Shown in pieces: positions 1 to 23,642 of a stretch of DNA of 64,000 bases; position 1 is the stretch's first letter, and the number at the start of each line of letters is the position of its first letter. The translations under genes were made by a program, and so were the position numbers. Under the pieces are notes generated by a model that did no database searches, had not been told where the DNA came from, and saw only the letters and a program-made list of their open reading frames with translations. This DNA comes from Macrostomum lignano. Lineage: Eukaryota. The DNA lies in NCBI GenBank assembly GCA_002269645.1, contig NIVC01000067.1, positions 186,001 through 250,000 of the forward strand, written 5' to 3'.

Positions 1-2802
1 AGTGGCTTAACAGCAGACTGAGCCACCAGATCGCTTAGCGTTTTTATGGGCAAATCCGTGAAGCTGATCGTCAGATGGGCCGTCAGGTCGCCTGCAAGTG
101 TAGCGAAATCAAGATCCAACCCGTGACATTTCTGAGTTCAACTTTCAGGTTTCCAAGGCCTTTAAAATAAAAATATTTGCACCCTCACCCGTGTAAGTTC
201 CATAAATGATGACGGTGAACATCCACCAGAAGGCCAGCACAGCTCTTGGAGACATGGCAAACGGATAAAAGTCCTGACCCTGCTGCATGAAGCTGCCAAC
301 TATACTCCAAATGTACTCCTGCAGCCAGATCTCATCAGCAAAGGCAAACTCCAGTCTCAGGTTGTAGGCAGTGAATGGAGAGAAATAAGCCAGCACCCAC
401 GTGACTGCGGCGGAGACAAAGATGAAAATAATGACTAGAATCCACACATCGTAATTGAACGGAGTGAAAACATTCCACAGCTTGGACTTGGGCGGAGGCC
501 GGGGCACCAGAATTCCGTACGCTTCTTGGAAAAGTGGCGTTGAGAAGTCGACTACGCCGTCGCGGGTGGTAGACTTGGTGAAGGTGGAACCTCCGATGGA
601 AACAATCTGAAGGTTGTCAAACAATATGTGATTACTAATTGTTCCATATTTATTCCAATTATGATCAACTTCGCAGGAAAATACTCACTCCTCTCTGTAC
701 TTCTCCGACGCATCCGGAGAAGTAGCTCTTTCCAGCCTGCGGCCCGCCCCACTGGCCATCGTCAGGCACCTTCACGCTGTACCTAAGATGACGATGAAGA
801 TTCAGCGAATCGTAAACATTGGTTCAGCACCACCTAAAATAGGCGACAGATCTAACGAAATCATTCACTCACCGAAAGTCCAAGCGCGCTGCAAGGATAT
901 CCAAGACATCCTTTAGCATTCCACCCACAATCACCGTCTTGTTAGGAAAGGTTTGTCGATATATTGTAAAAGGAAAAATCTGAAATTTCGAATACGAGAA
1001 ACTTTAAAATCTGCAAAGATTTGTTCAAAAACTGGATCAGAAGATAACAAATATTGACCAACTTCAGTGCTACAGATACGAATAGTTTCGTTCTTGAACC
1101 CCAGGAATGTGTTTGGGAACACGAGGCTCACGCCCTTCTCTCTGAACAAAACGCTTAGCGCTCCACTCTTGGTGTTGTACATTCCCGACTGAATGAACTG
1201 AATAGGTGATGACAGTTTCTGGTTGAAGCTTCCCACCACTTCGATGCCCTGCGAGTCGAAGTGACCGGTGGTCGAGTTGAACGAGATCACTCCTCGGTTC
1301 GAGTTGTAGCCGGACATCTGTTATTACATTTCAGTGGTCAGGAGAGTAAGTCTGCATTCGATAGTAGGCGTAAAAAGCAACTCCGATTTTTAAAGCACTC
1401 AACTCACGCTTGTCAGCTTCGAATAGACGGACGGCCCCGAGCTCCACACCTGCAGAGGATTGCAGGCAGCGTTGCTGACATTGAACGTCGACTCAGTGAC
1501 CGCATCGTTCAGTGCCTTCGCCAGAGCCTCGACTGCATCAACGAATCGAGTGTCCAGTGTCTGCAATTGTCAGAATTTTCAGAATTTCAGCGTTGCAGTT
1601 TTCACATCGACCATTTTCATAGCTTGCAGCTATGCTCAACCGTTTCACTGCTCACTCGGATCCAGTCTGTGTCGCAGCTGTCGAATACGTCTCGCACAGG
1701 AGCGGAACATGATCCGGGAACGTTGATTCCGGTTGTGCCTCCTCTGACGAGAGCGACATTCGAGTTCGAGATGATGTGGTGTCTTATCTGTCCTTTTGCG
1801 ATTCCCGTATCGATGATGAGCCAAAAGTAGTTCTGCTGCATCACCAGTGACGCGTTTGCGTGATCAAGAATTGCGAAGACGTTAGCTGGTTCGGCCAGCA
1901 CCAACATGTGGAACACCTTCTTCTTCAGAAGTCGAGTCATGTGAGCGTTGAGGTCCGTGACCAGAGCTCCGCTATTTGTGTCCACTTGGAATGTGAGCGA
2001 GCTGATTCCGTGTTTCGTAAACGAGTTTTGCAAGTCTTGCAACACCATGATACCTGAAAATCAGTTTAGTGAGCTTATATGAATATGAGCTATGTCAGAT
2101 AATTGAGTATCTGATTCTCATCATTGACTGAATCACTGACTCTGCTTGCTGTCAAAGAATATGACGACCTCGGATGCAGACGTCGCAGCCATTGTCTTCA
2201 CTGCAGCATTGACCATGTGTAAGGGATCGTGCATTCCGAAGACACTGTAGTCTGAAGTGAACCCGACTTTCATTGGGTTTCGAATCGCATTCGTGATTTT
2301 TGAGATCAAGTACTCCTAGGCTAAGGACTGCACAGACTTACCCGTTGACGAATATTGTTCTTTGCAGATGCCAGATGGAAGCGAGATGAGTGGCAGCTGC
2401 ATCGTCTTTGTGGCTGCCGAAATCTGCATCAGTGTACTGCACTGACCGACGGCAATCACGCCTGATAGTCCAGTCTGCTCACACACTGTGGGTGGGCCAT
2501 GCAGTTGGACAGGCAACAGTCAGACAGTAAAGACACACAATACAAGGCAGACTGGCTCACTTACTTGACTTGACGATTTGAGTAGCACTGCAGGAAGTGG
2601 CGTTGATCTCGACAAAGCTGATGCTGTGACCCGCCAACACCCGCCAGTTCGAGCTGACTCGGTGGCTGAACGCGTTGACAACGAGAGAGCGATTCACGGC
2701 GCCGTTCTCGACGACCACGGCCACTTTGAAGTTCAAGGACAGCGAATGTGTAGCATATTGCAGCAGGATAAAGTGCAGAAGAAATCGCATTGCTCGATGC
2801 AT
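1..2802 (-). CDS. iGluR-family receptor, copy A (3' end truncated by the window edge)
   Basis: Exons on the minus strand with GT-AG ends and continuous phase: 2790(or 2802)-2565, 2485-2342, 2251-2141, 2053-1656, 1560-1408, 1317-1063, 979-873, 782-689, 606-189, 91-<1. Encodes signal peptide MRFLLHFILLQYATHSLS, ATD, S1 (PDDGQWG; FTKSTTRDGVVDFS), M1, pore loop WSIVGSFMQQG and M3 (TYTGDLTAHL). No stops or frameshifts in the visible exons. Confidence 0.9.
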
Positions 2803-2870
2803 TTCACGGCTTTGGGTGAGGCACAGCTACAATCTGACTTTCTATTTACTTTCCAGAGAATCCCTTGCAG

Positions 2871-22700: not shown

Positions 22701-23642
22701 TTGACGGACTACACAGCTCTTCTGTACGTTGCCCGAGCCAACTGCAGTAAGGTGTACATTGCTGACGAAATATTTAACACGGCCACCGTCGCATTCATGT
22801 ACCCGGAGGACGCATACTTCGGCGCGAATATCGACTTCCAGTAAGACCGAAACTGCGGGATAGGATTAGATAGATTAGATAGATAGATAGATAGATAGAT
22901 AGATAGATAGATAGATAGATAGATAGATAGATAGATAGATAGATAGATAGATAGATAGATAGATAGATAGATAGATAGATAGATAGATAGATAGATAGAT
23001 AGATAGATAGATAGATAGATAGATAGATAGATAGATAGATAGATAGATAGATAGATAGATAGATAGATAGATAGATAGATAGATAGATAGATAGATAGAT
23101 AGATAGATAGATAGATAGATAGATAGATAGATAGATAGATAGATAGATAGATAGATAGATAGATAGATAGATAGATAGATAGATAGATAGATAGATAGAT
23201 AGATAGATAGATAGATAGATAGATAGATAGATAGATAGATAGATAGATAGATAGATAGATAGATAGATAGATAGATAGATAGATAGATAGATAGATAGAT
23301 AGATAGATAGATAGATAGATAGATAGATAGATAGATAGATAGATAGATAGATAGATAGATAGATAGATAGATAGATAGACAGATGCCATCACACCGACTC
23401 GCAGGTTTCAGAAGATGCACGAGACTGGCATCATGCAGAAGCTGTTCAACACCTATTGGTCAAGCGACGCGGTGTGCTCAAGTGGCAGCTCCACTGAAGC
23501 TGACTCGATTAATCTTGAAGGCTCGGGAGGTTGTTTCATTGTCGCGCTGGCCTTCTACGGTCTTGGCCTTCTGACACTCCTGGTGGAGCTGCTGTGGACC
23601 AAAGCGCTGAAGAGGCATCCGCTCGACTGCGTCGTCTATTGA
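19708..23642 (+). CDS. iGluR-family receptor, copy C: intact, 12 exons, 838 aa
   Basis: Exons 19708-19936, 20016-20159, 20232-20342, 20430-20827, 20923-21075, 21166-21420, 21499-21605, 21696-21789, 21872-22289, 22387-22592, 22677-22840, 23405-23642. They sum to 2517 nt with consistent phases and GT-AG ends. Domains: signal peptide, ATD, S1, M1, SFMQQG pore loop, M3, S2 (CLTDY), pre-M4 YWS...C, M4 and a short tail ending DCVVY. Confidence 0.93.
22864..23379. repeat. (GATA)n microsatellite, about 125 essentially perfect units, in the last intron of copy C
   Basis: Direct reading. Confidence 0.98.

Follow-up and report, generated by a model that had tools for sequence, protein, structure and literature searches.

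Three related ionotropic glutamate receptor (iGluR) genes, here called A, B and C, lie in a 64,000 nt stretch of the Macrostomum lignano genome (assembly Mlig_3_7, GCA_002269645.1; contig NIVC01000067.1, from about position 186001), referred to below as the window. They very likely represent a lineage-specific three-gene array evolving by repeated non-allelic gene conversion, in which the block encoding the amino-terminal domain (ATD) is homogenised while the ligand-binding domain (LBD) and membrane parts are old. B is an old paralogue of A and C whose 5′ 1.5 kb, comprising the mature ATD and its introns, was recently overwritten by A/C-type sequence. A and C have themselves exchanged several tracts; islands within the signal peptide and portions of the LBD remain unconverted.

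Gene structure

The copies were delimited by self-BLAST and a three-way MAFFT alignment, and gene models were assembled from reading frames and splice sites. Gene A (1–2802, minus strand) is cut by the window start; B (5580–9064) and C (19708–23642) are on the plus strand. A and B are thus arranged head to head, with C 14 kb downstream of B and in the same orientation. A 12-exon structure is common to all three, the lengths and phases of exons 2–12 being identical across copies (144, 111, 398, 153, 255, 107, 94, 418, 206, 164 and 238 nt). In A, exons 1–10 are located at 2802–2565, 2485–2342, 2251–2141, 2053–1656, 1560–1408, 1317–1063, 979–873, 782–689, 606–189 and 91–1 (minus strand); exons 10–11 extend past the window start and were read in the adjoining NIVC01000067.1 DNA. 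Flanking DNA retrieved from this contig (L001) matches window positions 1–33642 at 100 %. In C, exons 1–6 are located at 19708–19936, 20016–20159, 20232–20342, 20430–20827, 20923–21075 and 21166–21420, and exons 7–12 at 21499–21605, 21696–21789, 21872–22289, 22387–22592, 22677–22840 and 23405–23642 (plus strand).

Replacement of the ATD block in B

The ATD tract of B spans 5580–7082 (1503 bp, plus strand) and includes the exon 1 remnant, exons 2–5, most of exon 6 and introns 1–5; it matches A 2599–1091 and C 19902–21392. Counting substitutions only, each pair among A, B and C differs at 13–16 sites over the 1503 bp (~1 %), which bears out the original prediction that the copies are near-identical over the ATD exons, introns included. 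Taken as wholes, A and C are not simply ~99 % alike, but form a mosaic with islands of 15–40 % divergence. By self-BLAST, A 1087–2599 and B 7087–5580 are 98.6 % identical; B 5580–7087 and C 19902–21396 are 97.5 % identical, the shortfall being due mainly to one 18 bp intron indel. Synonymous divergence (dS, Nei–Gojobori) in the tract is 0.021–0.030 in all three pairs. Between B and C there are 10 coding substitutions in the tract (5 synonymous, 5 non-synonymous), where about seven had been counted by eye.

The first B-private differences fall at 7083–7085, the position at which an abrupt switch had been predicted. From here to 7835 (plus strand), covering the tail of exon 6 (start of the LBD segment S1), exons 7–8, the first half of exon 9 (end of S1 and M1) and introns 6–8, B carries old sequence of its own with unalignable introns and an intact open reading frame (ORF); against A and C the dS is 1.6–1.7 and the non-synonymous divergence (dN) 0.29–0.30. 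Exons 10–12 of B (8134–8339, 8495–8658 and 8827–9064, plus strand), which encode S2, M4 and the C-terminus, are likewise divergent with the frame intact, and their dS against C exceeds 2 (dN 0.25–0.28). Outside the converted tracts dS between B and A/C is saturated throughout (1.6–2.1) with a dN/dS of ~0.15, as expected if, as proposed, these are old paralogues. The gene models returned the same count of 23 of 36 exon 7 residues common to B and C that had been reported. Introns 6–11, described as looking unrelated, are 26–61 % identical between B and C per 100 nt alignment window, i.e. unalignable.

The 3′ edge of the B tract is not at a splice site; it lies within exon 6, 28 nt before the exon end. 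The first changed residue is that preceding ‘T(I/L)(R/L)(I/V)C’, a strand that aligns with the first LBD strand of ATD-less GluD1 constructs and of GluA2, and the switch is at most one residue from the LBD start as set by the GluD1 constructs. Because the homogenised block shared by A and C starts within the signal peptide, and because the tract edge coincides with the first LBD strand, the homogenised unit is the mature ATD, which starts just past the signal peptide and stops at the first S1 strand. In a GENECONV-type permutation test, in which the positions of differences were shuffled 20000 times, the observed identical runs were reached in 0 of 20000 permutations for B versus C and for A versus B; third codon positions alone gave the same result.

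Mosaic divergence between A and C

A and C are 95.5 % identical overall, yet their alignment is a fine mosaic in which dS ranges from 0 to 0.62. The near-identical ATD block (C coordinates 19753–21420, plus strand) differs by 20 substitutions and one 18 bp indel over 1668 bp; from codon 16, within the signal peptide, it reaches as far as the donor site of exon 6, 28 nt past the edge of the B tract. A first island of divergence follows immediately at 21421–21546 (plus strand), made up of intron 6 (~35–40 % different) and the first 50 nt of exon 7. A second, at 21796–22024 (plus strand), comprises intron 8 and the first ~150 nt of exon 9, encoding the end of S1 around the ligand-binding Arg. Introns 6 and 8 are both ~35–40 % different, and the others 0–6 %. 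Along the coding sequence, dS between A and C is 0.03 in the ATD, 0.62 in the first 51 nt of exon 7, 0.03 in the rest of exon 7 and exon 8, 0.27 in the first 156 nt of exon 9, 0 in M1, 0.07 in the pore, 0.30 in exon 10 and 0.24 in exon 11.

Within the ATD tract the variable sites alternate in affinity: A and B agree at 5686–5904, B is private at 5953–6046, B and C agree at 6136–6548, and A and B agree again at 7003–7056 (11 runs over 22 sites; permutation P~0.03, runs test). A copy of C on the sister contig NIVC01000845.1 (C′) is 99.3 % identical to C and reproduces its structure, and carries the B-type, otherwise ‘B-private’, alleles at four sites in exon 3 and intron 3. UniRef fragments from the older ML2 assembly (P0014–16) include B-type, A/C-type and further recombinant ATD variants.

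A fourth M. lignano gene fragment, P0007 (UniRef A0A1I8HNP7), is 84–88 % identical to A and C over S2–M4, closer than B is; it may be another array member from outside the window or a diverged subgenome copy. Different segments conflict on kinship. The upstream regions pair A with B, the LBD pairs A with C and places B outside A, C and P0007, and the ATD unites A, B and C.

The claim that conversion was repeated is supported by two B tracts of different divergence (the second, in the pore, is described below), several A/C tracts, alternating site patterns in the ATD, B-type variants in C′ and the conflict between segments over kinship. As judged from these alignments, the mosaic appears to be the product of repeated non-allelic gene conversion and not of purifying selection, because introns and synonymous sites are homogenised as well; the original prediction had likewise preferred conversion to amino-acid constraint. 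Uniform dS along the genes, which that prediction had named as evidence against itself, is not what was found: dS is strongly non-uniform (0.02–0.03 in the ATD tract, 1.6–2.1 in unconverted B sequence and 0.15 in the pore).

A second array with the same boundary

A second group of M. lignano proteins, from the ML2 annotation, is ~50 % identical to C. It consists of P0010/P0018/P0021 and P0012/P0026/P0027, the fused models P0024 and P0030, and the fragments P0011, P0025 and P0004. Two consecutive genes are fused in each of P0024 and P0030, so the genes of this group are tandem neighbours; there are at least six, with unrelated signal peptides. Each gene type is represented by about three near-identical UniRef entries, which fits the three subgenomes described for M. 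lignano (PMC10733133).

Compared with the P0021 type and with each other, the members of this second array are 83–99 % identical in the ATD (the lower values partly reflecting frameshifted models), 62–66 % in S1, 42–58 % at the end of S1 and in M1, 51–63 % in S2 and 54–63 % in M4. The switch, at ‘FMGFKNQTIV|’, lies no more than four residues from the position homologous to B 7083. Between the two arrays the ATD is only 49–51 % identical and is the least conserved domain. S2 divergence inside the second array is at least as great as divergence from a third group (P0001/P0031). The second-array ATD is array-specific, whereas the LBDs diverge as much among members of the array as they do between arrays. 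Restriction to the ATD looks systematic, with the same combination of identical ATDs, divergent LBDs and a homologous switch in both arrays. As far as the protein alignments indicate, ATD homogenisation appears both array-specific and recurrent, and this is the strongest support for the domain-restricted pattern originally proposed.

A conversion patch in the pore of B

A second converted tract in B, at 7836–8050 (plus strand), extends from the end of M1 through the FMQQG-bearing M2 loop and into M3 as far as YTG; its counterparts are A 398–184 and C 22080–22294. There are 4 B-private differences in 210 nt of the patch and 57 in the preceding 210 nt. The patch has a dS of 0.15–0.17, against 1.6 in its flanks, and its identical run was again reached in 0 of 20000 permutations, third positions included. 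The near-identity predicted for the M2/pore/M3 half of exon 9, synonymous sites included, is therefore real.

The further proposal that the pore is kept homogenised as a module fails in the second array, in which M1–M3 is only 75–76 % identical among members, lower than the 82–83 % between arrays. Since the pore is not homogenised there, the patch in B is better read as opportunistic conversion in the M1–M3 stretch, which is the best-conserved part of the receptor family. Purifying selection would keep this stretch most alike in nucleotides and so permit occasional conversion, as seems to have happened in B. The 215 bp M1–M2–M3 patch is somewhat older than the ATD replacement.

Receptor class

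C encodes an intact 838 aa protein with Pfam matches to ANF_receptor (66–359, E=1.3e-9), Lig_chan-Glu_bd (423–534, E=3.9e-13) and Lig_chan (549–808, E=1.6e-25), and the same three domains, ANF_receptor included, are found in B. Matches of C in the PDB are GluA2, GluK1/2/5 and GluD1 (E~1e-39). In common with these AMPA/kainate/delta-type receptors (GluA2, GluK2, GluD1), the order is ATD (ANF_receptor), S1, M1–M2–M3, S2 and M4, and the pore loop is FMQQG. The ligand-contacting Arg is kept in A, B and C (that of ‘taiRDSVVDFS’ aligning with that of GluA2 ‘tlvREEVIDFS’), as is an acidic residue, Asp, at the GluA2 E705 position (‘LTDYT’ aligned to ‘LLEST’). However, identity to GluA2, GluK2 and GluD1 is only ~25–30 %, and the SYTANLAAF gating motif is absent from M3 of A, B and C, where TYTGDLTAHLT, common to the whole M. 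lignano family, is found instead. The nearest relatives are all M. lignano proteins, which marks a flatworm-specific expansion.

Odour-specific ionotropic receptors (IRs) are recognized by loss of the ATD and of glutamate-contacting residues. Because A, B and C all retain a full ATD and the amino-acid-binding Arg and Asp, they appear unlike typical odour-specific IRs, and the chemosensory role that had been suggested would seem to be without support.

Condition of the three copies

Within the DNA searched, beyond which A or B could conceivably have alternative exons, only C has a signal peptide and M1, M2, M3 and M4 in one frame, and it is the only structurally complete copy in this assembly. 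B has no start codon, no signal peptide and none of the first ~65 residues; only the last 35 nt of exon 1 are kept (5580–5614). Relative to A, ~256 bp are absent (5′ untranslated region (UTR), ATG, signal peptide and the first ~65 codons). The frame is open across 5581–9064, with an in-frame stop nine codons upstream of the exon 1 remnant. Searches for exon 1 of B upstream of 5580 (tblastn, word size 2, E up to 100; blastn, word size 7) found only 11 terminal codons.

Promoter-like DNA at 5455–5579 (plus strand), with TATAAAAG at 5560, is joined to these last 35 nt. The corresponding segment upstream of A, at 2855–2983 (minus strand) with TATAAAAG at 2878, is 77 % identical to that of B over 129 bp. 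In both segments an open frame of ~40 codons lies upstream of the TATA box, at 2855–2983 (minus strand, MRRKAVADQISESL...) and 5455–5583 (plus strand, MKTVADQISESI...), perhaps as a conserved upstream ORF, perhaps as a portion of a repeat. Signal peptides and promoters had been said to differ among the copies. The signal peptides of A and C do differ, and A has its own (MHRAMRFLLHFILLQYATHSLS); B has none, and the promoter-like regions of A and B are related.

In A, exons 10–11 are intact outside the window, after which a 1.5 kb (TAGA)n array in intron 11 abuts sequence homologous to the 3′ UTR of C. Exon 12, encoding M4 and the C-terminus, was not found within 4.4 kb past the window start on NIVC01000067.1. 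A (TAGA)n microsatellite is also present in intron 11 of C (22867–23384, plus strand), and it is the homologous array in A that has replaced exon 12. The C′ counterpart carries a 9.4 kb insertion in exon 4 (positions 613–9998 of the sister-contig segment L002), with terminal inverted repeats of ~900 bp (93 % identical) and a 6 bp target duplication, GAGGAG. The inserted element is a large DNA transposon and may belong to the Polinton/Maverick type.

With B lacking a start codon and signal peptide, A lacking the M4 exon and only C intact, a working three-subunit combinatorial set, as originally envisaged, is not demonstrated at this locus. The losses in A and B may be recent and specific to this subgenome. 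The locus would be partly decaying in this assembly, with C alone able to encode a complete subunit.

The B LBD region is in no predicted protein of either annotation. NCBI model P0013 (window 5593–23642, L001 10001–28050, 769 aa, starting ‘ATQIVKS’) spans 18 kb and splices the B exon 1 remnant to C exons, omitting every other B exon and the retrotransposon described below. Its annotated transcript start at 5593, ~30 nt past the B TATA box, is no certain sign of B expression, the first 22 nt being identical in A, B and C.

Alternative explanations

Two simple alternatives can be set aside. Purifying selection alone is ruled out by the homogenised introns and synonymous sites and by the comparison between arrays, in which no domain is less conserved than the ATD. 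A recent duplication with rapid LBD evolution afterwards is ruled out by the saturated LBD dS with a dN/dS of only ~0.15.

Repeated non-allelic conversion amounts to concerted evolution acting on the ATD block, the LBD and membrane parts remaining as old lineages. A self-reinforcing barrier could maintain the boundary, since the diverged LBD and membrane parts would no longer be convertible and the ATD block would stay similar enough to keep converting. Divergence of the LBD would plausibly have been driven by selection on ligand specificity.

Several observations weigh against this explanation or the selection that might underlie it. The 5′ junction of B is non-homologous, promoter-like DNA being joined straight to the end of exon 1; plain conversion cannot have made at least this edge, which calls for a deletion or something more complex. 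The converted tracts show no rise in GC content at third codon positions (GC3; 0.66 in the ATD and 0.64–0.67 in the pore patch, with 0.57–0.68 in unconverted sequence), so the biased-conversion signature used for protocadherins is absent or undetectable. Part of S1 (exon 7b and exon 8) is also homogenised between A and C (dS 0.03), which speaks against selection for identical ATDs. The second-array evidence is at the protein level only, its source being genes predicted automatically in another assembly, with fusions or frameshifts in some models. If a boundary already fixed in a common ancestral array was passed on to both arrays, recurrence of the breakpoint would not be independent. Additionally, consensus polishing among 99 %-identical repeats could be the source of part of the SNP-level mosaic.

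The alternative that survives best, though it is itself doubtful, is the adaptive model of the original prediction, in which selection keeps the ATD and pore interchangeable within one array to give a co-assembling, combinatorial and possibly chemosensory receptor set. iGluR ATDs govern subfamily-specific assembly, and this counts in its favour. Both edges of the homogenised block are domain edges (just past the signal peptide, and the first S1 strand) and not exon edges. The ATD block is homogenised again in the second array of at least six genes, in a domain otherwise only ~50 % conserved between arrays. Between A and C, low dS values mark the ATD (0.03) and the pore (0.07), with higher ones at the end of S1 and in S2 (0.24–0.30). 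However, the second array shows no homogenisation of the pore, introns have been converted together with exons as a mechanical process predicts, and the homogenisation of A and C extends to exons 7b and 8, within the LBD. A and B, two copies out of three, are structurally defective, C′ carries a transposon, the B LBD is in no predicted protein and the GC3 signal is missing. Its chemosensory part is further opposed by the full ATD and the retained ligand-binding Arg and Asp.

A wider form of the adaptive model can be put forward only tentatively. Each M. lignano iGluR tandem array could be an ‘assembly group’ in which selection keeps the ATDs identical so that the products form heteromers, with the divergent LBD and membrane parts giving combinatorial specificity. 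If so, the constant/variable logic would resemble that of the protocadherins, with gene conversion taking the place of shared exons, and the shortened A and B would have fallen victim recently to redundancy following genome triplication, or else would serve as donor cassettes.

A one-off rearrangement, in which a single A/C-type 5′ block was pasted into B with a 256 bp deletion, without continuing exchange and with the other similarities coincidental, is improbable. It would account for the non-homologous 5′ junction at 5580 and for the nearly equal tract divergence in all three pairs, but not for a separate pore patch of different divergence, multiple A/C tracts, alternating affinities inside the ATD tract, B-type variants in C′ or the same pattern in the second array. 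Least probable of all is an assembly artefact, in which paralogues or subgenome copies of this neopolyploid genome, itself notoriously difficult to assemble, were collapsed or joined into chimeras and so gave rise to the shared segments: although Mlig_3_7 is a draft of a genome whose three subgenomes are ~98 % identical, with 93 % of short reads multi-mapping and copy number misrepresented (PMC10733133), and although the ~1 % divergence of the ATD tract among A, B and C is similar to subgenome divergence, each 1.5 kb tract has copy-specific flanks on both sides within a few hundred bp, which ordinary PacBio reads would span, private substitutions and indels are present in all three copies, the independent ML2 proteins P0014–16 show B-type, A/C-type and recombinant ATD variants, each second-array ATD/LBD combination occurs in about three subgenome versions, and NIVC01000845.1 repeats the C structure.

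Neighbouring features

A long terminal repeat (LTR) retrotransposon occupies 9130–15959, between B and C. Its 306 bp LTRs (TG...CA) are 100 % identical, and it is flanked by a 5 bp target duplication, ATGAT. Long gag-pol-type ORFs lie on its minus strand, and there is an integrase-like ORF at 10056–10685. The element begins 65 nt past the B stop codon; it is very recent and is possibly positioned in the B 3′ UTR. On the other side of the array, 4 kb past the window start (L001 274–1676), ORFs of 341–432 aa with a tyrosine-recombinase-like motif, HSMRRGGA, suggest a Crypton/DIRS-like element just downstream of the shortened 3′ end of A.

A minus-strand annotated gene (1059 aa) extends over window ~28394–33642 and beyond. 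It is a UNC-5-type netrin receptor, its sister-contig counterpart having Unc5_NetrinR_N, Ig/I-set, ZU5, UPA and Death domains. The region 26993–62793 is unusually rich in long tandem arrays, among them (CAGA)n at 34536–34969, (AGAT)n at 40982–41512, (ACAG)n at 57475–58207, a 34 bp unit in 68 copies at 42488–44844, a 21 bp unit at 39623–40173, a 7/21 bp AATCCC-like array at 27761–29483, a 29 bp unit at 58990–60272, and 33 bp units at 54654–55165 and 62412–62793.

Comparison with known systems

Regionally restricted gene conversion is a known process; what appears to be new here is its occurrence in iGluRs, the switch at the first LBD strand and the second array. No report of regional gene conversion for iGluRs or M. 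lignano, nor of an ATD homogenised array by array, was found in the literature. Trees built from full-length flatworm iGluRs, or from their ATDs, would mislead, and automatic gene models in these arrays are already chimeric, as in P0013. If selection does keep the ATD block uniform, the arrays would offer a test in nature of the rule by which the ATD determines the assembly partners of an iGluR subunit, a functional claim tempered at this locus by only one of the three copies being complete.

Conversion between functional and defective copies is known from CYP21A2/CYP21A1P and from opsin arrays. As here, structurally defective neighbours still exchange sequence with an intact gene; the difference is that the direction of transfer among A, B and C cannot be fixed. 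Tandem chemoreceptor arrays, such as insect odorant receptors (PMC8383895), also show mosaic identity arising from non-allelic conversion between neighbours. Those receptors are seven-transmembrane proteins and, unlike iGluRs, have no separable assembly domain.

The closest described phenomenon is the regional conversion of teleost clustered protocadherins (fugu Pcdh2 and zebrafish), in which part of the variable exon is >99 % identical per subcluster and the recognition domains are diverse (Yu et al. 2007, PMC1852091; see also Noonan et al. 2004 on protocadherin conversion, as cited therein). Both systems consist of tandem paralogues of a neuronal surface receptor in which one coding part is near-identical even at synonymous sites, the remainder is old, has diverged and carries recognition specificity, and homogenisation proceeds subcluster by subcluster. 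The iGluR genes differ in having 12 exons with the introns homogenised too, in one pair lying head to head, in several members being truncated and in showing no rise in GC3. The homogenised unit also differs, being the N-terminal assembly domain in the M. lignano array and the membrane-proximal ectodomains in the protocadherins.

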